Origin: Bugula neritina
Taxonomy: Eukaryota; Animalia; Bryozoa
NCBI GenBank assembly: GCA_964035545.1
Contig: CAXIUT010000046.1
Coordinates: 1-17,933 of the forward strand
Direction: 5' to 3'
Length of the DNA stretch: 17,933 nt
A program made the translations under genes and the position numbers. The number at the start of each line of letters is the position of its first letter. The first letter of the stretch is position 1. This document shows, in pieces, positions 888 through 17,933 of the stretch. The notes under the pieces are model-generated. The model saw nothing but the letters and a program-made list of their open reading frames with translations, did not search any database and was not told the origin of the DNA.

Positions 888-1527
888 ATGGCTGAAGAGC
901 AAGTAGCTATAAAGCTGGTGGTCGTGGGCGACGGATCGGTCGGTAAAACTTGTCTACTTATCAGGTATATCTTATACTTCTTAGTTATACTCAGGATCGT
1001 TTTCCAACTGAATATGTACCCACTGTTTTTGACAATTATTCTGCTACTGTCAAAGTTGATGGAAAAATGGTTACTCTTGGTCTTTGGGATACTGCTGGTC
1101 AGTAGTAGTACAATCGTTTGAGACCTTTGGCCTATCCGAATTGTGATGTCTTTCTTATTATCTTTTCAGTCGTAGAACCATCTTCTTTTGTTAATGCTAG
1201 AAAAAAAGTATTCATATTACTATAAAGTGGTATCCTGAGTTACAGGAGAACGTAGGTAATGTGCCTAAGATATTTGTTGGTAACAAGATCGATTTGAGGG
1301 ATTAGTATGCCATGTACAAGAAAGATCCAAAGGAGGCTCCTATTATGCGCTAGACAGCTAGAAAAATAATAGAATAGGAGTTTCAGTGTAAGTACATGGA
1401 GTGTTCTGCTTTGACTCAAGAAGGATTGAAGGGAATATTCGATGAGGCAATGAGAATAGTGATTCAGAAGAAAGCAAAGCCAATAGTGAAGAAGAAACAA
1501 GATAGTTCTTTCTGCAATTTGATTTGA
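888..1527 (+). CDS. Rho-family (Rac/Cdc42-like) small GTPase, 199 aa; introns 965-984 and 1208-1227
   Basis: Motifs [42 protein letters not shown] and ECSALTQ, plus a polybasic tail and CAAX box CNLI before TGA. Two 20-nt GT-AG introns restore the frame. Confidence 0.96.
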
Positions 1528-1636
1528 TTGAAATATCTATGATATAATAGTATAATAGTAATAAATGATTGAGTTAGAATGGTTTGGACGTGGATGTTTG
1601 AATTTAATATTAATAATTAATTATTTAACACCACAA

Positions 1637-1992
1637 ATGAAATACCTTGCTGCTTATGCTTTGCTTGCCCTCTCAGGCAAAAAAGATATCAGTACTATCT
1701 ACTCTATCCAGAATCTGCAGATGTTAAAGCTCTACTTTCAAGCATTGGCGCCCAGTCAGCTGACGAAGATATCACCCGAGTCATCGAAGCTCTTAAAGGA
1801 AAAAATATCAACGACTTGATGAATGAAGGACAAAAGAAGATTGGAGCTTCTAGCGGACCAAGTGCTGCAGGTGCTAAGAAAGATGCTCCTAAAGCTGACA
1901 ACAAGAAAAAATAATAACCCAAGAAGCAAGCTCCACCTCCTCCCAAGGAAGAAGTCGCTGAGGAAGAAGATCTCGGAGATCTCTTCGGCTGA
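1637..1992 (+). CDS. RPLP2: 60S acidic ribosomal protein P2, 111 aa; intron 1692-1711
   Basis: N-terminus MKYLAAYALLALSG, then LKGKNINDLMNEG, an Ala/Lys/Pro hinge and an acidic tail EEEDLGDLFG-TGA. Confidence 0.93.
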
Positions 1993-2134
1993 GTGATTAT
2001 CAGTCTTATTTAAATATTCATCACTATGCTTTGTCTATGCTTGTTATTTAGACAATTCTTTGACTAATTACAAATATTGATGATAATTTGATTAGGATTA
2101 TGATAATATTACATAATAGATCAGTTTCAGAAAC

Positions 2135-4090
2135 ATGGACGACTAGTTTATGAAGTATCTTAGCGAAGATGGAGTGGGTCAGGTTATTTCTCAGGGATTT
2201 GCTGATTTGTATTCTTGTAAGCCTCAGGCTCCTGTTAGGTATTTGGCTAATTGGTTTAAAAAGTATTGTAGTAACCAGGAGGAAATCAAACGTCTAAAGG
2301 AGCATTAGGTATTTAAAAGTAGAAGATGGAAGAAGAGTTAGTGAAAGAGAAGGAAGCCGAGAGGAAGAGAGAAGAAAAGCAACAATAGAATAAGAGATGG
2401 ATGGACTAATTGTAAGAGTTTAAAATTAAAATATAAAATGAATAGTATCACAAATAAATGCTTTTGCATGACTTTCCTGAATTTATTGAGAAACGACTGA
2501 AGTTATCAGGAGTCTATGTAGGTTTTAAAAAATATCCACCTATTAAAATTAAAGATAATGATGATGATTTCGATGCTCATCTCGATAAAAATCAATCTAA
2601 AATTATCTACTATATGGGCTCATCAGCTTCTCAAGCTGCATTGATGTTGGGTCAGTAGTTGTCACTTGAGAAGGGTGTTACTGGTGCTGCTTTGAATTTA
2701 TCTTTGGATGATCCTTAACCCAACTAATAAGGAGTGGTAGAACAGAAAGATAAGTATGTTTATGTGCCAAATGTAGTTAAAAATTAGAGTATGCACTTTT
2801 TTAGATTACCTAAGTTGGGTTCTTTTATGGCGATTCCTTTGGTTTATCAGGCTTATATTCATGAAGATATTTTCAATGTGGCGCTTTAGGCAAGGATCAA
2901 GTATCTTGCTGAGTTGTAGGAATTTTAGAAGGCTAAGGCTGAGGCTTTGAAGGAAATTTAATCGTAGATCCAGAATGCTGAGCAGAGGTTGTAGGAGGCA
3001 AAATAGAAAGGAGATGAGCCTGGAGCAGAAACAGCCAAAGCTGACTTAGAAGAGTCAACTAAAAAGTAGCAATAAAAATCAGCATAAAAATTTGAATAGA
3101 AGATAGATTTGCCAACAAAGAAGAAATAGTATGTGGTTTGTATTGACACATTGGGTCAGGACCGTGAGATCTCGAAAGTTCATCAGTAGTGGTTGGTGGA
3201 TATGGTTCGTTATTTTAGAAATTGTTGGTAGAAGAAATCAAAGGAGCTGCTTTACAAAGATGTTGAGTATCAGATTGGTATTCAGCAGGGTCAGTAGAAG
3301 AGTTACTAGGCTTTGGTTGATCATTTGTAGAGATGTACTGACTTGCCATCGGATGTGAGGACTGGAATCGACTAGCTCTAAGATGAGTTATTGAAAGATT
3401 ACAAGCGTAAGAGTTACTAGTTGGATGCATTGAGGAGAGAGTTGAGAGATAATCCTGTATATCTGAATAACTTTTGCTTTCTTAAAAATTTCAGAGTGAT
3501 GAAATTTAAAGGATTGATCCAAATCTTGTTGTATTTATTGGGTCATAAAAAACATGAAATCAATCGACCGAGTACTAATGATATGATATAGATAAGACTA
3601 GGCTGGACTGGAAGAAGGTGAAGTCAACTTGTTTTGAGAGTTAAACATTTAATGCATTGATAGATTTTCAATCTGAAGGTCCTAAGCCTGAATAATTTGC
3701 ATATTATTCCAAGCCTAAATTCATTGCTGAAAATTGTATTTAAATATTTATGTAGTAACTAAATACTAGGAGGCAGATGTATATAAATTCAATATCGGAT
3801 TGGGTGTTCTTTTGACATTGGCTAAGAAGACAGTAGCTCATCGTGTTTGCAATGTTGAGGTGCGAAGGGCTCAGAAAGAGAAAGATCGATAGACCATTCG
3901 TAAACTGATCTAGTAGAATGAGAAGATAGCTGAGGAGAGAGTGAATGGTTTATAGAAGTACAAAGGCGAGTTGACTCCTGAATAATTATAGGCATTTAAG
4001 GAATAGACTTGGCTGGAGACTTATGATTTGGAGAATGCTCCTAAGTAGATTCCTGAAGATGTGGTTGAGGATATTGATAATGATTACTGA
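2135..4090 (+). CDS. DPY-30-motif protein with GAF-like central region (radial spoke RSP2-like ciliary protein); introns 3572-3591 and 3736-3755, plus an unresolved frame junction near 2309-2325
   Basis: N-terminal YLSEDGVGQVISQGFADLYSCKPQAPVRYLANW is a DPY-30/RIIa-type motif. It is followed by coiled coil, GAF-like elements (KGVTG...YVPNVVKN..MHFFRLPKLGSFMAIPL...YVVCIDTLGQDR) and a C-terminus PEDVVEDIDNDY-TGA. The RSP2 label is inferred from the DPY-30+GAF architecture. Confidence 0.72.
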
Positions 4091-4116
4091 TGTCCCAATA
4101 ATATTAATAACCATTG

Positions 4117-4578
4117 ATGAACGAAACATAGAAGTATCTAAATAGCATTCTGAACAAACGGTTGGGTTCAGTTGTCAACCAATCTGCTTTCCCTAATAAT
4201 GCAGGCACTGTTGCTAGAATACCTTTGCAGGAGTAAGAAGTGGCTAAAATGCCAACTGTTTTCAGGAAAAAACATGAGACAGTTATTATGGAGCAAAAAA
4301 GTATGGCCAGGGATTCAGTGGCTATGACGATTGTTGAGGATAAGATGGAGAGTAGAGAGAATGATCGGGAGCCTGTGGAAAATCATCGAGTGGAGTATAT
4401 GGCCATATCGAAACGGCTGACCAAAAAGCAGAATGAAGAGTATACCAGTTAGGCTGTAGATATTGATAAATACGAGACCAAGAAAGAGTTATCCAAAAAT
4501 AGAATCGAAGAAGAGTAGTTACGTGGAACAGTTGGAGGCAAAACTAAACGTAAAAAAATATTTTAGGAATTTGCTTGA
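4117..4578 (+). CDS. Hypothetical protein, 153 aa, charged
   Basis: ATG to TGA open frame under UAR=Glu (MNETEKYLNSILNKRLG...KRKKIFEEFA). It includes track ORF 4240..4452. No family recognised. Confidence 0.7.
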
Positions 4579-4704
4579 TTATATTGGTATTTTGTTCAAA
4601 ATCATTGTAGTATAGTACTCTGATAGATAGCTATTAATGATAGTAGAAAATAAGTAAAAGCTAGATAGTTAATACTTTTGATGGATGATAAGTAATAGAA
4701 GAGA

Positions 4705-5979
4705 TCAATTACTCATGAACTGGTTGTAGTTGAGATCTTATTTTTTGAGGAAAGCTTTGGCTTATTCTTCTTTGACTACACCTGTTATTTTATTTCCTGT
4801 ATATTTGAGTCGATTGATCTTTTTGAGGTGTTCGAACTGTGCATAGAAATCTAGACTATGATGATTCTTTAGTTTTTATTTTTAATTCTTATTGACTTGG
4901 GACTAAATCGAATCTGCAATAGCAATAATTCTATTGACATTATGTTTTCCTATTTTGAAATCACTGCGTTTGATATCTTTGTTTCTATTATTAGTTCTGC
5001 TTTTATAATCCTGGAATCGTCTCTTATCTTACTTCTAGTGATAGTAATCTGCCAAATGGATGCTAGTTAGAATCAGGTTAGGATAATACTATAAATTATT
5101 GTTTACGTCTAATACTTACTAGTTGTCTAGGGCATTCATTTTTCTTTTTATAAAATTCTAATCTGAAGGACCGTGTTCTCTTACATGTTGGATCACCTTG
5201 CTAAGGTCGCCTATGTTGATAAGATAACTTAGAGATCTATGGATGTTTTTTTATTATAGACTTTGGATGGTTCCCTAGGCAACTGATCTAGCTATTACTT
5301 TCATCTTTTATAAATTGAATTCGATGTTGTCGAATGATGCTTTTATTTGAATACTTAGTGTTTTAGTACATTTTTATAGTTAAGATTGTGGTACTCTTTA
5401 TTTGTAGTGATCTTTGAAGGCTTGTTCTACAGCTTTGAATATGATCTTTTAAAACTATTCTACTGGTTTGGGCATACAGAATGATATCATGGTTCTGAAG
5501 GGTAGTTCTAGAAGATATTATTTCTTCAAAAAATTAATGCCACAGAATATAAAGCTCAAACGAAATGGAAATTATCGCTGGCAGGCAGCGTAGAACGCAG
5601 GTATGAAAGTCTAACTCATAACCATTTATTCGATATTGTCCATGAATACATAGAGGTTGTCAAGGTAGTTGATTAGACCAGAATTATTTGCTATCAACTT
5701 TTTCATTTAGTTTATCCAGGAATCCAAGTTAAGAGGAGAATTAGGTTTTTAGAATCTGGCTTTTTTTCCATTCAGATATTTATTTAGTTCTACATTGAAC
5801 AACTTGAGAAAGTTAGACTTTTTATTAGCAAGAGTGCAGTTGATCTACAGGTAAGGTACGTCGTTTTTGTCCAGTAAAGAGTGGATAAGAGTAGTTTTTC
5901 CTGAGGCTTTTTGTCCATAGAGTATGAAGGAGACATTGGCTCTGAGCAGTCGTACTATAACTTATGGTTTGGGAAGCAT
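4705..5979 (-). CDS. ORC5: Origin recognition complex subunit 5-like AAA+ protein, 424 aa
   Basis: Walker A FILYGQKASGKTT, VPYLEINC, Walker-B-like YVFMDNIE. The C-terminal LILTSIHLADYYHEKEDKRRF and NRIIAIADSI resemble the ORC5_C motifs AYLAS.N....D.R.F and RLLAI. The 425-codon frame is uninterrupted. Confidence 0.75.
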
Positions 5980-6136
5980 GTTTTTGCGGGGTTTATTTAT
6001 ATATTTGAATTATGTGATTAGGCTAAATAATTATAAATCATCATTCAATATCATTTATAGTTTGTTGATATTGATTGATGATCAGTATTAGATCATATCT
6101 ATTGATGGTTATTTAGAATAGTTAGTCTATAATTGA

Positions 6137-7560
6137 ATGTTTTCTGATCGATAACTTCAATCTTTTCCACCAAAAACTCTTCATCTTATTCAAAATGGTC
6201 ACCCATAAAATCTATTCTCTTAAACCTTCACTAAACCTCTTACTCGCAAGTAGTTGGAGTCGCTTTGTGATCGACGTTGGAAACAACAGAAAAATAAACA
6301 TCTACGACTGTTTAGTATAGAAGGAGTATAGATCATGGAAGAGTAGCTGCAATATGTTCGTAATAATGCTAGAATTTATATCAGTCGTGGTATTGTTAAT
6401 GATATGTAGGGTAGGATTTCGATAGTAATAGAAATTTTGGAGAATATCAGTTGATATAGCAATTGGGTGAGGGGGGATTCGGTCGAGTTTGGTTGTCGAA
6501 AAGTAGTATAAATCAGTAGATGGCAGCAATTAAAATTCTAAAACTATAAAAAATATGTAAAACTGTCAATCATATAGCTGGTACCAGAGATATCGACATG
6601 TTATTTCGTTAAGTATAAACTCTAAAAGTACTATCTCATACTAACATCGTCAAAATTATAAATTGTTATGCTTTATCTAATATGCAGTTGGTGGTGGTGA
6701 TGTAGTATTTATCTGGAGGCGAGTTGTTGAAGATGTTGAAGTAGAAGGGGAGATTTGACTAGTAGACTGCTTTGAAGATATTTGTGCAGATAGTCAATGC
6801 GGTTGCTCATTGTCATCGGTAGGGGATTATTCATCGTGATCTTAAATTGGAAAACGTGTTGTTTTAGAATAGAGAACAGATGAAAGTCAAAGTGGCTGAT
6901 TTTGGTATTTCTGGAGTAGCTGATAGTTTCAATCCTGATATTGATATTGGAACTTTAAAATATATGGCTCCTTAAGTCCTAAATAGAACTTAAAAAAATA
7001 ATAGTACAGCAGTTGACATATGGGCTTTAGGTGTTATTTTGTATTGTATGGTCTATGGAAAGTTACCTTTCTCGTAAAGTAGTAAAAGTGCGACCATCCA
7101 AACCATCATCAAAGGTCAATTTGCCTTTCTCAATAATAAATATGTAGTCTCAAACTAATGTCAAAATCTTATCAATGCTATGTTAACAGTAGATCCCAAG
7201 GCACGTCCGTCCATTCACTAACTGCAAAGTTATCCTTGGATGCAAGGAATTCGTTAAACTTTTTAAGATAGAGTCATCTAGACTGAAATAGAATAGCCTC
7301 AATCGCCATCACCGGCACGTTAGAGACGCAAGTTATCAGGTCTTCCTCGCAAGACTGTGATTCCTAAGCGATTGTAGAGGTAGAAGGAGTAGGTGATGTA
7401 GTAGTTGAGGAATATGAAGGGTAGTCGTGGTAGGCTGCCTCGTTCTGATTCAAAATTTAGATAAAGTTCTCCTAGATACATGATGAATATTCGTTGTAAG
7501 TAGTAGGAGGGCCGAGGTATAAAGCGTCGTAGATCTTTTATATCTTCATTATGGAAATGA
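6137..7560 (+). CDS. CAMK-group (AMPK/MARK-like) Ser/Thr kinase with N-terminal KHA/ubiquitin-like domain; intron 6390-6409, possible 21-nt intron 6557-6577
   Basis: Motifs GEGGFGRV, AAIKIL, MEYLSGGEL, HRDLKLENVL, DFG, GTLKYMAPE and DIWALGVILY. The N-terminal RLFSIEGVEI...IYISRGEDFD module precedes the kinase domain. Confidence 0.93.
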
Positions 7561-7629
7561 ATCATTTTGATTTTATTCTAACTTTTTATTTTTGTTTGTT
7601 TAGAATAATATAATCGCTGAATAGAACAC

Positions 7630-8178
7630 ATGTCATTTTTCAATCTTTTCAAAAAGGTAGAACCCAATATAACAAACAACCCAGATCTTGATAGCACTTT
7701 CTTCAATATGAACGTTAAACAGTTGCCTAGCAATTTTGCTCAATCTCTTATGGACCTATAGATGAAACTATAGTTCGCATAGACCTATGAGTTGGATGTT
7801 GTTCGTTAATTGAACTAGTTGTATCGAAAGGGAATTTAATATTATGTTCATCATGATCCTAAGAAAGCAAAACACTTTCAAAGAAAACTTACATCACTAC
7901 TATCTAATCCTCAAACCTTGACTCTTTTTGATAAAAAACCTCAAGAACCACAAACTCAACACTACCAAAAAACACTAAGAAGCTAGATAGGAGATTTTCA
8001 TGCCCAATCTAATGCTCTAGTAGCCCAAATGATTGAAGGATCATAACTTAAAATATAAAAAACGGGAAGGATAGTAAACCAGCAATTAATAGACCAATAG
8101 AGCCGATTGAAGAGTCGTTTGGCTTCTCGAAGTAGCAGTCGTCAAGCTAGAAATAAGAAGGCATTTTTATCTCCATGA
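7630..8178 (+). CDS. Hypothetical helical protein, 182 aa
   Basis: ATG to TGA open frame under UAR=Glu, MSFFNLFKK...ELNELYRKGIEYY...KHFQRKLTSLLSNP...KAFLSP. Confidence 0.75.
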
Positions 8179-8209
8179 TTTTATAGTAAAATAATAAAGA
8201 GAAAAGATA

Positions 8210-9235
8210 TCACTAGTCATCATTTTATTATCGTCCATAGATGTGTTATAATTTTTGTTATAGCTCAATAAGGAAGGAATCTTGTTTATATCTGTTAGCT
8301 TTATTTTATTTCTTTATGTGTCTCATAGCTTGTTCAATTGATAGCTCACTATCTGAATTATTTAGTTAAATAGTTTGGATTTAGCTGTGTTTTCTGTTGG
8401 TTGGAGTGTTTTCATGTGGTTTTTGTTTTTATGATTACTATGTTGTTTTTATTGTTTTTTTGAATGAACATTTGTTCTCTATTAAGTTGTTTTAGTTGTT
8501 TTATGATTTTTTATTTTTTCTAAAAAATCCTTGACTATTTTGATTTCCTTAACTTTTTTGTTTGAAAAATGATGGACTTTTCATTCCTACGACTCTTGAT
8601 TGAACATTTTGTCTGCAACCTAAGGGAAATTGACTCATAGCCATCATTCCTTTATTAGGAGTACTCTTTATAGAAGTATCAGGAGTAAATCCTTTTCCTG
8701 GAGATCCTTAGAATTTCGATTATCTATTTCTATTTCGATAAAATTTACCATTAACATCTTGATTTATTTCCATTCTATTTGGACTGTTCGCGAAGGTATG
8801 ACTATACCTTGACGTAGGACTGGTAAACTGAAAAGATTTGGGTGATTGGTAGTGATTGGGACTGAGGTAGGACTGGTGTGTGGGTGTGAAAGTGCTATAT
8901 AAACGTTGATGGTTGTTGTTATTTTGAGGATATTGTGGATATTATGGATATTGAGGTTGGTTGTTGTACATGTTGGGTGTTATTGATATGCTTTAGCTGG
9001 GTCTATGGGTGTGATTGAAGTTGTGATTGGGTGTATATGAGTAGCGTTCAGTGACGGGTTGTGGTTAGCTGTTTCCAATGAAGGAATGTTGGATCTAAAA
9101 TTGATAGTTATGTACATTCATGACTGCTTCTAGTTGCATTTTGAGCATAGTGTTTTATCTTTTGAGGTTTGTTATTGTTTAGTTACTAACTTGGTTGATG
9201 GCTACTGGTTGCCAGAGTACTTGTGAAGGCTGCAT
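8210..9235 (-). CDS. Hypothetical low-complexity protein (Q/N/P/S-rich, many SP/TP sites); probable 21-nt intron 9095-9115
   Basis: Open from ATG 9235 to TGA 8210 under UAR=Glu. It has a short N-terminal coiled coil (LKRENTMLKMQLE), YPQ-type repeats and a helical acidic C-terminus (FLIELEQKLEHIYGREENDDE). Confidence 0.7.
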
Positions 9236-9383
9236 TATTAGAAAAATATTCTATTTTTCCATAAATCATATCATAATTTTTTAATGATTTCTATTGATGA
9301 AAGATAAATAAAATTTTGTTCTATCATTTTCTCCCTTAAAAATCAAATATTGAATGATGATAATTAATAATTGTAACTTCGTT

Positions 9384-9905
9384 ATGCAAGGTTCCAATAA
9401 CACATTTACTCGTACAGCTAAAAACAGTCTGTATAAGACCAATAACCAAGAATATGGTACTCCTTGGGTGCAGAGCAATCAGAGGCCGGAGCAGACCAAC
9501 ATCAAGAAAGACACGATTCCCACGTATTCTGAGATAGTGGGTTCTTTGCAAGATTTCAGACGTACTTAGAGATTGATTAAAAAAAAAGTGTTGTATGAGA
9601 AGTTGTAGCAGGAAGGAGTGGATCCTCATAGTGAGAACAAACGCTATCAGAAAAGCACTCAATTTCATGTGACTAAGGGTTACGAAGAGTATCCAAAACA
9701 TGGAGTAAATGTTGGCAATGTGATGTACCATACAAACAACATGAACTATGGATCTAATAAACCTGCCTAGTTCTAAATTCAGGATAAATACCATCCATGT
9801 AATAGCAACTTTACTCGATCTTTCAATGGAGGCCCGAATAGGTTCAATGGACTCAATACTGTCAAAACAGTTAGTGGAGTTCATTCTAGTTTGAATGATA
9901 TGTGA
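9384..9905 (+). CDS. PIERCE1/PIERCE2 (DUF4490, FAP182-like) ciliary microtubule inner protein, 173 aa
   Basis: MYHTNNMNYGSNKPAEFEIQDKYHPCNSNFTRSFNGGPNRFNGLNT matches the family pattern YrTtN..YG...P...e.P..y.P....F.......g..r..gLNt. A second YKTNNQEYG motif lies near the N-terminus. Confidence 0.75.
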
Positions 9906-10146
9906 TCCCTCATTAATACTTTTTTTTTACACTACAATAAAATTAGAACAGAAAAATTTAATATCAAGTAATGGGGGGCATAATAGGAAGGGAGAGATAA
10001 TATAGAAGGAAGCGAGTATGAGATGAGATGGGTTGAAGTAAAGGTTTATGTTGATTTTTGTTTGAATATATCATGTATTAATGTTTTTTGATGTATTGGA
10101 TATGTTCTTAAATGCATGGTAAAAAGTACGACTCATATAATATTTA

Positions 10147-11037
10147 ATGTAATTGATCAAAAGATCATCAATTCTTTAAAAAGATGAGGAATATCATTGC
10201 AATGAGTCATTTGCTAGCTGTTGGCCATAGGTTGATAATGGTTCTATTGAGATAGAAGCATAAAATGATGTGAATGGATCTAATCACCCTTAATCCTTTT
10301 GCTATATTCCTGAATGGGAATTAAGTCCTCCACTTATGGACATTCCTGAACAGCCTAGACCTCAAAAATATCAGAACTTGTCCCCTGAAGAAGCTGAACA
10401 GTGTGACAAGTTCTTGACCTTTGATGCTAGTTCTCCTTAGCCGATTATATCTTAAAGATTAAAAGAAGAAGTTGTTCAAGAAGAGGAATCTCATAACATT
10501 CAAAACTCTTTCTCAACATTGAATTCTTAATTTAGTGAGAATAGGGAGTAATTGAATAATTCTTCTGAAGAGAATTGTTCTCTTTTCAAGGCAGAGAAAA
10601 AGAGACGTCTAAGAAACCAGGAAAAAGATTATTCAGGCCAGGCAGACAAATTCAGAAATCATTTTCCTAATATTGTCAATAGAGTGGTTAAAATGATGAT
10701 CAATGATTGTTAGGGATTGATTCAGAAGATGTTTAAAAAGATAGGAGAAGATTATGAAGAGTTTTAGACAAAATGTCTTTAACTTATGAAGAAGAATTGT
10801 AGTTGTGAGAACTTTTCTTTGTTCTATGATTCTCTAAGACCTCATCCTTTGCTGATGAAGATCTTTATGAGGACTTTTGAACGATTCTTAAGGAAAAAGT
10901 ATTCAGTGCTGTTGTTGAAAACTGGAAGGGCTAGTGATAAGGATGGCTACTTCTGGATAAAAAATACCAAAGCCTTATGGTTTGAGGAATAATATTCTCT
11001 CGAACAACAATTATGGGCCTCGAAAAGGACATAATGA
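10147..11037 (+). CDS. Hypothetical protein, 296 aa: acidic/disordered N-terminal half and basic helical C-terminal domain
   Basis: Open ATG to TGA frame that includes track ORF 10786..10992. The C-terminal domain reads KFRNHFPNIVNR...FERFLRKKYSVLLLKTGRASDKDGYFW. Confidence 0.75.
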
Positions 11038-11119
11038 TATTCAATAGCTTATCATCTATACTAATCAACTTTCAACAAACGAATTTCATTCGCGAAGAAC
11101 TCATATCAAAATAATAGAC

Positions 11120-11891
11120 TCAAATATATATTTTCAAATATCTTTATCTAAGCATTTCCTGCAAAACAGATTGTTTCATTCTTCCAGAACTGGCCAAATC
11201 TACTTCATTCAGCATCTACCTATTTTTTTTATTGAAAAAGGTTTTAATTTGAACAGCCAAGTGAGTGAATGTCCTTGAACTCTTTTTTAATCCCAACTAA
11301 AATAAGCTAACTAATACCTTTAAATAGCAATAAACTAAACATTCTTACTAAATGTCATACATGCTAGATCTTAAAAATCATTGATATAATTGCCTTATAG
11401 CATCAATTCTGCCAAATATTTACAATTCATTTTGGTCAACGGTCGAATACTAACCATTTAGTTATGTGCTATTTATCTATCTAAATACATATCCTCAATT
11501 TTTATAGAATGGGGGCATTGATTTTGCTGAGTCCTTCGATATTTCGAATGTTATTGACTTCTTCACTAAACATCTATTACATAAATTCAAGTAGACTAGA
11601 TTGTCAAAAGATATGCCTGATATATGTCTGACCACTCCTTCATTGTATGTCATTTCTATTTTAGGAGAGAATCATACAAATTGATAATCTTTCGACTTAG
11701 CTCTTTACCATCATCATGAAAATTAAATCCCATTTTTGCTATTGGTATTGTTTGTGTTCTTGAATATAGATAAAATCACATATTTTCCAGTTGTTTTTGT
11801 TCAGTATTCTCATAATAGTCATAGTAAACAGTTGTACTTGTTGTTTGTATTTGTTTCTATCAAATAGAGAATTTCCCATACATGTATTCAT
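11120..11891 (-). CDS. Leucine-rich repeat protein, ~222 aa; introns 11656-11677, 11561-11580, 11469-11488, 11297-11317, 11200-11219
   Basis: After splicing: FDNLVYLNLEVNNIRNIEGLSKINAPILEKLRISHNEMVSIRPLTKMNCKYLAELMLEGNYINDFEDL, i.e. LxxLxLxxNxI repeats. The spliced length is divisible by 3 and ends in TGA. Confidence 0.82.
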
Positions 11892-11913
11892 TGATAATTA
11901 TAATATGACATGA

Positions 11914-12792
11914 TCATTGTTGCTTGCATTCTGGCTTCTATATCTCTTTCTTTACCTTCTTCTTTGGATTTATGCCCTACACCTATGAGTCGTCATCCTC
12001 GGCTTAGAGGTCCACTGGGATATCGTTTTTTGTCATGTAGAAGTAAAGGGAATTGCAGTAGTCTCGGTATAGTTAGTTTGCTAGACTGACTGCTTCTTGG
12101 TTGTCTGTTTTCGGGTCGAATAAAACAGTGAATACTGAAAGAGGATTCTTTTATCCTTTGAAATTAATTTTATCTCTATTTACTTAACAGCATAACTAAT
12201 TATCTTTGACAAAGTTTTTAACTTCTATGTTAAGAACGGTATTGCTAAATATTTCTGGAGGTTATTTGAATTTGAAGGTCAATTTGATGTGATTACTATC
12301 TCTATCTTAGTTGAGTAGTTGGCATTGGAAGGAGCTAATTTGACCAAAAGCATCAATATCTTATTCTAATTCGATGAGTCCGGAGTTGATGTAGACGATT
12401 TGCCAGTAGTTATCAAGAGCTTTGACTTTTTATTTACTATTTTTATGATTTTTAACTTATCCTGAGACGACTTATCCGATTTATTGATAGATGGGATGTT
12501 TCAACAACTCATATTTATCTTTTATGAGGTTGATTTCTTATCTCATTTTTAAATCTGTCTAAAGTTATTATTTTTTAAGACTATAAAGAGCTAGCCATGC
12601 CATCTTTTACTATGGAGAACCCTATTGTGTTTGTGTGCCTATGATCTCAAGTAAATCTAGTTGTTATTTGTTACGTTATTATGAATCTGATTCATTGTTG
12701 CCCAGTAACATATCTTAGTCATCTTCTTCGAGTTATTATTAAGGTTAAGGTTATTTTTGTTTTTTTTGTGGTTTTGTTTGTTTTGATGGCAT
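11914..12792 (-). CDS. NAP1: Nucleosome assembly protein (NAP1 family histone chaperone), 292 aa
   Basis: Acidic N-terminus, a long dimerisation helix (INLIKDKYELLKHPIYQEIGEVVSGE), LDNYWQIV...EEDIDAF...IKLTFKF...FSNTVL, SLYFY, an acidic tail and a terminal KPECKQQ (the NAP1 prenylation motif). Confidence 0.88.
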
Positions 12793-12934
12793 AATTTAAT
12801 TTATTTATAGGCGCATTAAATAAACTAATATATGTCAATAATTAGTCAACAAATCAAATACTTATTCAATAACATTTTTTTTAGTTTTTGATATCTTTTT
12901 ATCACTTATAATTCAAAAGAATAAAATTATCAAA

Positions 12935-14380
12935 ATGTAATCCTCAAAACTCCAAACTCTTCTAGCAATATAATCAATGATCCAATCAACTGATGAACTT
13001 CCTCACAATCATTGTTAATGTTACCATTGTGTTCTTAATACGAAACCATTGACTAAAATATTAGCTCCTCGATAGGTCTCACAAAAATAAAAAATAATGG
13101 GCAACACTAAAGCTTACTAATTTGTACTAAAATAAATGACCAAAGGATTTGCAGGTAGATCGCTTGTTCCAGATGTTTTTATTGTTTCAGATTCTGTCAT
13201 GGTCTATCAAGGCAAAGGAAATGGAAGACCCAGAATTAAAGAGCATCAAACCAATATGGATGCTAAAAAACATTTTTAGGAACAAAGAAGAAGAGGTGTA
13301 ACTGGACTAGGAATATCTCAACTTATGGTGAGCTCTATTTTTACTATTCCTGAGTAGTCAGGTGTTAATACTGGTCCTACTACAAAGCAACTTCAAAAAG
13401 AGGTGTCAATATTGGCTTATCATGATGGTACATAGCAAATATTAACCTAGGCTCTTCTGAGTAAGATCTTGGGCAAAAGAAAAAACGATCCTAGTTGGTA
13501 AGGAGTATCTCATTTGCTTTTACTTCCTCCTGAAATGCGTTCTCCATTGAATAAAGTCAGACATGAATACATCCGTTCAGCTGATACTTTGCCATAACTG
13601 ACTCCATTGATTGAAAAACTAGCTTTACAGTTGGATAGTATAGAATAAAATAACATGTTAAGAGGAGTTAGTCGTTTGTAGAATAATAAATTGAGCTATC
13701 TGAAGGTGTAATAATAATAAGAAATGGAGTCATCGATAAATCCTTAAAGGTTGTGGTAGACTTCAGTTCGTAAGACAAAATCGATGATAATACCTAAACG
13801 TAATAGTTCTGTGATGGTTTAATAGATGAAGCCTGAGTATATAAAAAGTGCTTGTTTATAATTGGTGGCTTTTATTGAAGTAACTGCATTTATTCGGATC
13901 TTGAAAGCTGATTTTTAGTTTTTTAAAGCCAATAATAAACTGTATCTTTCCAATATTCTCAATTTTATCTATTAGGAAATAGAAGGATAGCAGTTGACGA
14001 TGGTTCATGATCGATATCGCCCTATGTAGTAGATACAGTTGAAAGAGGTGGCTGCTAAGAAGCAGGAGCTGGATTAGTTGTAGGCGAGATAGTTGTGGAA
14101 GATATGTGGAAATATGATTAAAGAATCTTTGGAATTGAGGAAGGTGGAGTTGAAGTTAGAGAGTTATAAGGCACCATCTGAGTAAACTAGACTTAAAATA
14201 TTTATGAAAATATTTCCAGATTTTAAGGTCTAAAAGATATTTTAAAGTATCAATTGGAAAAATTAGTTAGGTTCTTTTATTTCATAAAGTAAATTGAAGA
14301 TCAATAAAGTTATTCGAGAAGATTAAGGAATAAGAATATTGAGGAGATTTGGAATATAATTCAGAAGAACTTTTCATTGA
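12935..14380 (+). CDS. Hypothetical protein, 481 aa
   Basis: 482-codon ATG to TGA frame under UAR=Glu with an N-terminal HNHCECYHC cluster. No family recognised. Confidence 0.78.
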
Positions 14381-14457
14381 TTTTTAGATAATTTAAACAT
14401 TTATAAATATTTTATCAAATAAACAAAAGTAAATTAAGCAATATATACAAAGTAAAA

Positions 14458-15668
14458 TCATTCTTTCTATGGGATATCTGTTACAAGAAAGGAAGTATTC
14501 CCGAAATCCTCTCTAATCGGATTAAAACTGCTTTTAGTTTGTGCCCAACTTTCTAAACTAAATTCTCCAATAAATTCATAAGATTTAACTACTTTAGCCT
14601 ACTTATTTAATACTTGTTTGTGCATTTGAGAGAGTAATCCAAAATCTACTGGAAAAAATATATCAGCTTATCCTCTTTTAACTAAATAGTTCTCATAATC
14701 TGTCTTCTACTAGCTTTTATAGCCTTTGCGGGAGACGATGGGAGCATTGATTCCTGGAACAGTCGTGACTAATCTATCGAAATCACTGATGACTAGATGG
14801 CAGTTGGGTATGTTTTTGTTCATTGACTTGAGTAGTTGTAGGAGGTATGTGGGAAGGAAAAGATCTTTGGAGTTGGTATTTATTTTTTTTATCATTTTGT
14901 TGACAAAAAATTATGCTATTTTATCCATGAAGGGTTGTTTTATGACTTATGAACGATCAAGAGATTGATACATTTTTAAACACTACTTTATGAGTGGATC
15001 TTTATCTATATTTTATTTAGATTATTGATTGTTTTAGATATTAACAACAGAAAAATCTTCATATTTTTTAGTTTATTAATTCCAAATGGCTTTATCATGT
15101 GGTAAATTATCGAGTACTTAAAAGAATAATACAAAGCATGATTAATTTTCTTTGTAATTAGAGATATCTTGATTAATGATTTTGATTTGTTTGTTTTTGA
15201 TAAGTGAAGGAAAAGATTTGGACAGCTTTTGTTAAATTCTTTTACATAGAGAAGGTGATATTTCTACTATTGAATATTCTACTAAAGGTAGTAGTTATCT
15301 TTTGAAGTTACTGAAAAAATATAAAATTGATTATGCTGCACTACCTGTCCCAGCACCCGCTTATACTATCTTTATTTTTTGTTTTTTGTTATATCTCTAA
15401 TGTGCCTATACTAGATATCTTGCTATGGTCATTCCATAGTATGGTTTAAAGATTTCACAGGGTGTTAGCCAGGCATTTTTTGGATATTTTTGGATTAGTT
15501 ATTTTTGGTAGTCATCGTAGCCGATGAGTTGATTGAAGTTTATGGGTGAGGAGAGTTATCCTACTTGGAAGTCTGTATGAGTTGGTGGTTACTAGATTTG
15601 CAGAAGTAGCCTTGAGTTGGATGGTAGAGGCGATCGTAGATGTAGTGTCTTAGAGGTACTAATCGCAT
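14458..15668 (-). CDS. NDUFAF7/MidA-family SAM-dependent methyltransferase, 396 aa; intron 15573-15592
   Basis: Motifs RHYIYDRLYHPTQGYF, WLTPCEIFKPYYG, motif I IVEAGAGTG, VEISPSL, FEVLDNLPHD, SDFD, GINAPIV, ADIFFPVDF and NPIREDFGNTSF. Confidence 0.88.
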
Positions 15669-15678
15669 TATATTTAAT

Positions 15679-16905
15679 ATGGAATTAACCAACGAACAAC
15701 TAGCATAGCAAATCAAAAGGTTAAAAAATTAACAACTCTACAAACAAACCATGATCGATAGTATTGTTGCTACTGATCCTGAAATCAAAGCTATGAGAAA
15801 AAAAATCGATGCTTCTTATACGAGTAAATAACGAGCTAAACAAATAACTGAAAAACAAGTGAGAACTTTAGAAGAAAAGAGTTAAGAATCTCAAAAAGAA
15901 GCTTAGATGTTGATGGCTGCTAGAGAAGAGATGCAAAGAAGAGAAGCTCAGAGGAGAGCAGTTCTTTAAAAAGAAAAATAGATCCAACAGATTCAAAATT
16001 CTCAGATGCTTAATCGTAGAGAATATGAAGAGGAAGCCCGTCGAGAGTACCTAAAAGAGAAAGGAATAGTCGATAGATAATATCAGAAAATGGTGTAGGA
16101 CTAACGAGCCAAAATGGAGGTATAGTAAAAAAAGAAAAAAGAGCTGTATGAGGCAATGAAAGAGCAGTTTAAACTTAAGGAGGAGATCAGATTTGAGGCT
16201 TAAGTAGCTGATCGACAGTAATTGGAGAAGATAGCGCAGTATCAGAGTCGATTGGATGGAAGAGACAAATTACAAAAGATAGAGATGCAGAAGAAATAGA
16301 AAGAGAAGGAAGCGATATATTTGAAGTTGAAGGCTGCGGATGAGTAAAGGAAAAAGGAAGTTGAGAGGTTGTAACAAATGAGAATGGAGTATTATCAATT
16401 TATTAAAGAAGAAGAACTGGATAAGAGAGAATTAGAGGAACAGCAAAAGAAAGATAGGTTTAGAAGATTGCTACAAGAAGCAGCAAAAGAACAGAAAGAG
16501 ATGAAGTAGAGACAGAAACAATAGGAACATTATTTGTAGTAACAATTCAGGATAAGAATGCTGGAAAGGATGGCATAACAATAAAAATTGTAGCAACTAG
16601 CTCGTGAGAAGAAGAGAATGAAAGAGTTATAGCATAAAAAGGAGGTTTAGAGACTGTGGCAGATCAAATTGTAGCAATACCGATAGATCAAAGAGAAATA
16701 GCAGAGATAGATAGAATAGAAAAGACTAATAGACCTTTGGCGTATTAGGATAGTATAGCAATAGAAATAGAAGATTCTTCGAGAGCACGCTCCTAATTTG
16801 ACAGGATTTTTGCATCCAGATTTGATTTAGCGAGCAAGGATAGTGGCAAACTACCATCCTTAGAATCCTCAGAATCCGGACTACTTATCAAGATATAAAC
16901 AATGA
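15679..16905 (+). CDS. MNS1: MNS1 (trichohyalin-plectin-homology domain) ciliary coiled-coil protein, 408 aa
   Basis: PEIKAMRKKIDASYTSKERAKQITEK resembles MNS1 ELRELEKKLKAAYMNKERAAQIAEK. The C-terminal IVEQEKEKILREHAPNLTGFLH resembles EEERLKLLKEHA..LLGYLP. The rest is E/K/R/Q coiled coil. Confidence 0.8.
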
Positions 16906-17586: not shown

Positions 17587-17648
17587 TAGTTTAAAATACA
17601 AAATAATTTTCCAAGAATATTGAAAAGACTTTAATCACTATTAATGGT

Positions 17649-17716
17649 TTGGGGTTGGGGTTGGGGTTGGGGTTGGGGTTGGGGTTGGGGTTGGGGTTGG
17701 GGTTGGGGTTGGGTTG
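17649..17716 (+). repeat. Internal telomeric tract (TTGGGG)n, about 11 units
   Basis: G4T2 hexamers ending in a G3T2 variant, followed by unique sequence. Same orientation as the terminal telomere. Confidence 0.97.
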
Positions 17717-17857: not shown

Positions 17858-17933
17858 GGGGGTTGGGGTTGGGGTTGGGGTTGGGGTTGGGGTTGGGGTT
17901 GGGGTTGGGGTTGGGGTTGGGGTTGGGGTTGGG
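17858..17933 (+). repeat. Right telomere, (TTGGGG)n
   Basis: Tandem G4T2 repeats run to the end of the window. Confidence 0.98.

Follow-up and report, generated by a model that had tools for sequence, protein, structure and literature searches.

Evidence for UAA and UAG as glutamate codons on a telomere-capped ciliate minichromosome in the Bugula neritina assembly

The stretch of DNA analysed here, which we call the window, is the whole of contig G000:C55 (CAXIUT010000046.1, 17,933 bp) of the Bugula neritina assembly GCA_964035545.1. It holds ~15 genes on both strands, and our subject is the genetic code in which they are written: TAA and TAG stand inside the reading frames, very probably as glutamate codons, and TGA closes the frames. 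Reading the sequence directly, we found telomere repeats at both ends, C4A2 at positions 1-97 and G4T2 at 17858-17933. C4A2-type telomeres are typical of Oligohymenophorea. The assembly comprises 216 Mb in 321 contigs. Nine of these, C1-C9, are chromosome-scale (13-36 Mb for the seven with lengths given) and contain metazoan-type tRNA genes and ribosomal DNA (rDNA) arrays; their eRF1 and kinase genes are free of in-frame stops. Many small contigs among those listed carry the telomere repeat at their ends and internally, with 8,260 pattern matches assembly-wide. Because the telomere caps and the shared repeat set the small contigs apart from the host-type large ones, we conclude that the window represents an entire minichromosome from a ciliate macronucleus, co-assembled with the animal host.

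Five genes of the window show the pattern. The first encodes a Rho/Rac-family GTPase of 199 amino acids (gene model, 888-1527, plus strand; exons 888-964, 985-1207 and 1228-1527) with in-frame TAG at 1103, 1106, 1303, 1351 and 1375. The TAG-TAG pair at 1103-1108 comes after ...LWDTAGQ. The stop-free pieces of this gene match Rac1/Cdc42 chains in the PDB (E 1e-15 and 1e-9) over residues 23-61 and 64-96, and the TAG-TAG pair therefore corresponds to Rac1/Cdc42 residues 62-63, which we take to be Glu-Asp (DTAGQEDY). A gene model for acidic ribosomal protein P2 follows at 1637-1992 on the same strand, with TAA-TAA at 1912-1917 in the acidic hinge and an intron at 1692-1711. This intron and the two modelled in the Rho gene (965-984 and 1208-1227) are each exactly 20 nt long and have the form GTA...AG.

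A Ser/Thr protein kinase is encoded at 6445-7560 (plus strand; Pkinase, 198.6 bits, 8 TAG and 8 TAA inside, TGA at 7558-7560), with TAA 6610 in the context LFR-x-V, TAG 6703 in VVM-x-YL and TAA 6973 in YMAP-x-VL. On the minus strand, a Methyltransf_28 gene of the NDUFAF7/MidA type spans 14458-15429 with its stop at 14458-14460; the match (PF02636, 99.2 bits, profile positions 1-240 of 249) crosses 5 TAG and 14 TAA with no TGA, and includes TAA 15361-15363 in KIV-x-AGAGTG and TAA 15118-15120 in LFF-x-VLDNLPHD. The fifth gene, at 15751-16905 on the plus strand, encodes a TPH-domain coiled-coil protein of the MNS1/trichoplein type (PF13868, 98.7 bits, profile positions 4-350 of 352; TGA at 16903-16905). 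Its match contains 19 TAG and 13 TAA and again no TGA. In frame in this gene are TAA 15829-15831 (TSK-x-RAK) and 31 further TAA/TAG. All seven TAA/TAG positions that the earlier note had singled out were found in frame, with the coordinates and contexts it gave, and the identities of the Rho, kinase, Methyltransf_28 and MNS1 genes were upheld by PDB-chain and domain matches. The matches that span stops come from read-through family searches; Pfam on short stop-free pieces gave mostly sub-threshold matches. Together, the four domain-supported genes (Rho, kinase, Methyltransf_28 and TPH) contain 72 in-frame TAA/TAG and no TGA in ~1,050 domain-aligned codons. As a trinucleotide, TGA occurs in the window no less often than TAG, with 461 versus 411 copies on the plus strand.

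Where the protein family defines the C-terminus, TGA follows it directly. This holds after the Rho CaaX box CNLI (TGA at 1525-1527), after the P2 tail ...DLGDLFG, after the C-terminus of a profilin-like gene, for which the match reaches profile position 127 of 127, and after the C-terminus of the ciliate eRF1 described below. With these four of four termini, and with TGA at the end of every long open reading frame (ORF) in the window, the claim that all gene models close at TGA stands, and UGA as the only terminator is supported at the level of sequence.

For the identity of the amino acid, we used the DNA of standard-code homologues as reference and aligned the ciliate proteins with X at each TAA or TAG. 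The kinase profile was made from 68 of 80 collected giant-virus kinase loci; scans of giant viruses with a CDK piece and with the eRF1 alignment gave 0 loci and 1 locus, respectively. In the window kinase, TAA 6610 falls on the alphaC Glu column (E in 67/68) and TAA 6973 on the Glu column of the APE motif (62/68), both near-invariant, and TAG 6703 falls on the hinge column, which is shared by Glu and Asp (E45 and D17 of 68). These are the three kinase sites for which glutamate had been claimed, and the columns bear this out. A further codon, TAG 6760, lies on a mostly-Glu column (36/68). Two sister kinases of the same ciliate, encoded on C256 and C314, have TAG at the alphaC Glu and at the APE Glu. 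More than 100 kinase domains on small contigs, scoring up to 256 bits, contain 1-20 in-frame TAA/TAG each; any TGA was seen in six of them, where it may reflect introns or frameshifts. On the large host contigs most kinase matches are without any stop codon. For the Methyltransf_28 sites 15361 and 15118 and the MNS1 site 15829, the support consists of the domain matches.

A second set of columns comes from the eRF1 gene of the ciliate itself, which we found on contig C314 (G000:C314:17036-18349, minus strand; L058:5037-6350). It comprises 437 codons, among them 11 TAA and 7 TAG, and ends at TGA. C314 and the window are present in the same runs of three studies, and their telomere repeat and G+C content are alike. 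Compared with a profile of 28 stop-free eukaryotic eRF1s from metagenomes, TAG falls on columns with E27/28, E28/28, E28/28, E28/28 and E24/28, and TAA on columns with E28/28, E23/28, E27/28, E28/28 and E19/28. The Glu sites that bear TAA or TAG include E55, FEPFKP, RMEKRH and GGENG. The eRF1 exons of the host have Glu at 8 of 13 TAA/TAG sites of the ciliate gene. Taking kinases and eRF1 together and considering columns with at least 80% agreement in the reference, we find that 15 of 16 TAA/TAG sites are Glu.

Relatives of this eRF1 allow a test that is independent of any outside profile. Eleven metagenome eRF1s (L143-L148, L150-L153 and L155), which are 71-81% identical to the ciliate protein, contain in-frame TAA/TAG and no TGA, and each of them was individually inferred to use TAA for Glu. 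In the 12 eRF1 orthologues, GAA/GAG make up 46-56% of the codons opposite TAA/TAG, and TAA/TAG a further 33%. GAT/GAC account for about 10%, CAA for 2% and AAA for about 0%, and this profile is the same as that opposite GAA or GAG themselves. TAA, TAG, GAA and GAG hence behave as synonyms. In the eRF1 tree, the ciliate lies within this diverse 12-sequence clade, which uses the Glu code throughout; the sister of the clade is a single sequence (L149), and other recoded ciliate-like eRF1s come next. Three other metagenome eRF1 loci (L156-L158) have in-frame TGA in addition to TAA/TAG, together with a second-frame match over residues 76-131, which suggests that a different ciliate lineage has either a site of frameshifting here or a code with UGA as a sense codon.

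We then pooled the sites of the kinases, of an H+-pyrophosphatase (H+-PPase) on C54 and of eRF1 in a Codetta-like likelihood calculation. The H+-PPase contributes six usable in-frame stops, which are weak alone; two apparent TAG at frame junctions (intron ends) were excluded. For TAA (36 sites), the posterior for Glu is >0.9999, with a log-likelihood (lnL) gain of +36.2 over Gln, +18.4 over Lys and +84 over Tyr. For TAG (22 sites), the posterior is 0.99998 and the gains are +24.1, +10.9 and +53, respectively. As a check of the method, the procedure was applied to the kinase and H+-PPase sites without eRF1, where it was correct for 41 of the 48 sense codons that had five or more sites; the errors are conservative swaps that reflect the Lys-rich viral reference set. 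The claim of the earlier note that UAA and UAG both encode glutamate is thus upheld by three lines of evidence that are independent of each other: the invariant Glu columns, the 58-site likelihood and the interchange with GAA/GAG in orthologues. We regard the observation as confirmed and as lying far outside what chance would give; the code itself is the one already known as table 30.

Turning to the decoding machinery, we found two tRNA(CUA) genes on telomere-capped contigs, one on C10 (L056:6788-6859) and one on C256 (L057:3981-4052). They are 75% identical to each other; in both, the TCC..GGA acceptor stem is Glu-like and the D arm is GGTTAGGA. In the C10 gene, the acceptor end with U1-A72, C2-G71 and C3-G70 and the GGTTAGGA D arm are as in tRNA-Glu. 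One ciliate tRNA-Glu(UUC) gene is present, on C54. The ciliate eRF1 departs from the invariant eukaryotic motifs in three places: the GTS loop of the N-domain (invariant form GNGTSM) has a one-residue deletion, the NIKS region reads RASQIKD instead of TASNIKS (invariant form GTASNIKSRV), and the YxCxxxF motif reads YNCDSRF instead of YLCDNKF. All 12 eRF1s of the clade share the GTS-loop deletion, KAxxIKD and Y[N/S/Y]Cxx[K/R]F. The GTS loop, NIKS and YxCxxxF are the elements of eRF1 that read stop codons. Since the changes fall in these elements, a UGA-restricted eRF1 is reasonable to propose. Of the UGA-specific eRF1 that had been predicted, the alteration of all three stop-reading motifs is plain, whereas UGA specificity as such cannot be read from sequence. 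In the mechanism that we propose, tRNA(CUA) and an unseen tRNA(UUA) would be charged by glutamyl-tRNA synthetase (GluRS), and the altered eRF1 would no longer recognise UAA and UAG; the two would then be ordinary Glu codons beside GAA and GAG, with UGA terminating translation.

Several observations weigh against this reading. At 6 of 15 eRF1 sites, the comparison with standard-code species gives R, Q, P, K, S and one weak E. The clade itself is mainly Glu/Asp at five of the six, and as the R/Q/P/K/S sites are mainly GAA/GAG/GAT/GAC in the clade, we interpret them as lineage-specific acidic residues; at the sixth (node 332), the orthologues have Asn, Thr, Ala, Val, Ile and Lys codons, neither Glu nor Asp. 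With the window sites alone, the kinase profile separates Glu from Lys only weakly for TAG (E 0.54 versus K 0.45), because the giant-virus reference kinases are Lys-rich, and the case for TAG in the window draws on the hinge column, on TAG 6760 with its E36/68 column and on the pair at Rho residues 62-63. UAA and UAG may also have a minor use as terminators in some genes. Identity between the tRNA(CUA) genes and the ciliate tRNA-Glu(UUC) is just 55-63% (63% for the C10 gene), which is no closer than to other isotypes; this is a comparison by overall identity with ciliate tRNA-Gln outside the set, and the isotype is not decidable from it. The C10 gene is 74% identical to a host tRNA-Lys. Neither a tRNA(UUA) nor a UUA version of the suppressor body was found in the assembly, in which the ciliate is only partly represented. 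Of the suppressor tRNAs that had been predicted, the CUA form is therefore present, with an ambiguous isotype, and the UUA form was not seen in this partial assembly. Finally, none of the runs on record as RNA contains the sequence. Weighing these points against the columns, the likelihoods and the orthologues, we consider it very probable that this minichromosome, which has C4A2 telomeres and introns of 20 nt, carries nuclear genes translated by the peritrich-type code (table 30). A tRNA-like sequence with a UUA anticodon (L037:1468-1542) on host contig C5 has a poorly paired structure and was set aside as probably a pseudogene or chance match.

Which ciliate this is can be approached from several sides. 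Peritrichs are known to read UAR (UAA and UAG) as Glu (PMC10553269, PMC11687900, PMC4695839), and we think it likely that the organism is a peritrich. The strongest alternative keeps UAR=Glu with UGA as stop and places the organism outside the peritrichs, in which case the code would either have arisen independently or belong to a clade far wider than the one known. This reading draws on the fact that the ciliate is unplaced: a universal 18S 3'-end pattern run on the assembly matched only host rDNA, on C6 and C135 (99.95% mutually identical), with no ciliate rDNA, and the ciliate could for this reason not be placed by rDNA. Moreover, the SRA runs behind the contigs that encode five looked-up relatives match neither SRR1768437 (Carchesium polypinum) nor SRR1768423 (Campanella umbellaria), the two known peritrich transcriptome runs, and relatives in the protein databases, both 50%-cluster representatives and the members of their clusters, are recorded with no taxon. 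Among ciliates, however, the code has been reported only for Peritrichia, with an inferred single origin (PMC10553269), and the 12-member clade of eRF1s that all use the Glu code, among recoded ciliate-like eRF1s, fits an old and widespread group. Three peritrich genomes are reported to have intron lengths within a narrow range (PMC13685798), and the fixed 20-nt introns of the window are compatible with this; in the H+-PPase gene on C54, the frame junctions are consistent with short introns, and intron lengths were measured within the window only. The window is almost complete in runs labelled as three different organisms, from three studies, which fits the lifestyle of an epibiont or cobiont, and a marine plankton metagenome contains a small share of it. 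Taken together, a non-peritrich source appears unlikely. The fuller version of this idea, in which a ciliate outside Peritrichia either acquired the code a second time or marks a larger unrecognised clade, characterised by the eRF1 GTS-loop deletion and occurring in many metagenomes of freshwater, wastewater and marine origin, seems to us slightly less likely still.

The remaining alternatives concern the code rather than the organism. In an ambiguous, context-dependent code, UAA and UAG would mostly mean Glu and would also serve as the stop of some genes, the situation found in Condylostoma or Blastocrithidia. This would be compatible with the sequence alone, and exact gene ends are fixed for four genes only; yet all four are TGA, as are the ends of all long ORFs in the window, and TGA is absent from >1,000 domain-aligned codons, so that we hold such a code to be very improbable.

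Glutamine for both codons (table 6) is the commonest ciliate reassignment and the one inferred to be ancestral for Oligohymenophorea (PMC10553269), and one eRF1 TAA indeed lies on a mostly-Gln column (Q18/28). At that column, however, the clade itself has GAA, both codons occupy invariant Glu columns in kinases and eRF1, and the likelihoods favour Glu over Gln for either codon (lnL about +36 and +24). With CAA opposite TAA/TAG in so few cases compared with GAA/GAG, the distinction from table 6 that had been claimed is clear, and we give glutamine almost no credence. The same low standing falls to the split code of Oligohymenophorea sp. PL0344, in which UAA is Lys and UAG is Glu. It is known from a related class (PMC10553269), and the Lys-rich reference kinases lend Lys some likelihood at variable columns. 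Against it, TAA is found at the alphaC Glu in two kinases and likewise at the APE Glu in two, in eRF1 it occupies E28/28 columns, Glu exceeds Lys for TAA by the lnL margin given above, AAA/AAG essentially never stand opposite TAA, and the introns have 20 nt here versus a median of 57 nt in PL0344. The claimed distinction from this code stands as well, and a split reading is exceedingly improbable.

A standard code with pseudogenes or assembly errors, which has nothing in its favour beyond the in-frame stop codons themselves, can be dismissed, given the more than 100 kinase domains with scores of up to 256 bits and given that the in-frame stops are only TAA/TAG, concentrated on Glu columns and conserved as TAA/TAG/GAA/GAG in orthologues. 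Two further known codes were ruled out. The Mesodinium code (table 29, UAR = Tyr) fails by the lnL of Glu over Tyr for both codons, and the Blastocrithidia code (table 31, UGA = Trp) by the lack of in-frame TGA in the window domains and in the ciliate eRF1, together with TGA at gene ends.

The window has further genes and features. The profilin-like gene already mentioned lies at 179-676 on the minus strand, contains in-frame TAA and TAG and ends at TGA 179-181; its C-terminal piece matches Pfam Profilin over positions 86-127 of 127 (E 7e-5). One or more long ORFs at 2135-4090 (plus strand) have dozens of in-frame TAA/TAG, TGA at the end and an N-terminal docking motif of the Dpy-30/RIIa type (2147-2305, E 0.0014, below the Pfam cut-off). 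A short stop-free piece at 5848-5961 gave a sub-threshold Pfam match to a candidate P-loop NTPase, and a small PIERCE1/2-like gene with in-frame TAG and TAA and a TGA end lies at 9384-9905 on the plus strand (PF14892, E 0.0024, below the cut-off). Towards the right end of the window there is a second G4T2 tract at 17645-17712, of the same polarity as the terminal one at 17858-17933 and separated from it by 145 bp. Contigs C10, C11, C14 and C15 likewise have multiple internal telomere tracts of equal polarity. Such tracts could be alternative telomere-addition sites or minichromosomes joined in the assembly.

Two small contigs of the assembly deserve mention. C73 (70.6 kb) has a G+C content of ~19% at the sampled locus L043, a repeated segment and tRNA-like genes with odd anticodon loops (L010, L043 and L044), and is probably the mitochondrial DNA of the ciliate. 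On C214 (65 kb; L002 and L013), at least 11 tRNA genes lie close together in a cluster, and the contig looks like an organelle or a bacterial cobiont rather than ciliate nuclear DNA.

Since the code has been known since 2003, our results leave the knowledge of genetic codes unchanged, and what they offer is of practical use. The ciliate cobiont accounts for about 300 small contigs of the assembly, and annotation with the standard code or with table 6 would mistranslate or truncate their genes. Code inference with Codetta over the whole assembly would mislead: with ~96% of the sequence coming from the standard-code animal host, which dominates the result, the reassignment would go unnoticed. 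The telomere-to-telomere minichromosomes, including the eRF1 and suppressor tRNA genes, are a possible genome resource for a ciliate with UAR=Glu. Should the organism prove to be a non-peritrich, convergent evolution of a rare code would be shown.

Among known systems, the closest is the peritrich nuclear code itself. Table 30 is found in the genera Vorticella, Opisthonecta, Carchesium, Campanella and Trichodina. It reportedly goes back to Sanchez-Silva and colleagues in 2003. The peritrichs with this code and the present ciliate are alike in reading UAA as Glu and UAG as Glu and in having UGA as sole terminator; for the eRF1 GTS-loop deletion, the mosaic tRNA(CUA) and the multigene minichromosomes with 20-nt introns, descriptions from that group may already exist. 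The code of table 6 (ciliates, dasycladaceans and Hexamita) is similar in that UAA and UAG are sense codons, UGA is the sole stop and eRF1 has NIKD-type changes; it differs in the amino acid, which is Gln there and Glu here. Oligohymenophorea sp. PL0344 (PMC10553269) shares UAG = Glu, tRNA(CUA) genes and the UGA stop, and differs in UAA, which is Lys there and Glu here, and in its introns, with a median of 57 nt compared with 20 nt. Finally, Blastocrithidia (table 31, PMC12153298) has the same UAR = Glu assignment. It is, however, a trypanosomatid in which UGA encodes Trp, whereas the window belongs to a ciliate in which UGA is a stop and is absent from the coding domains.

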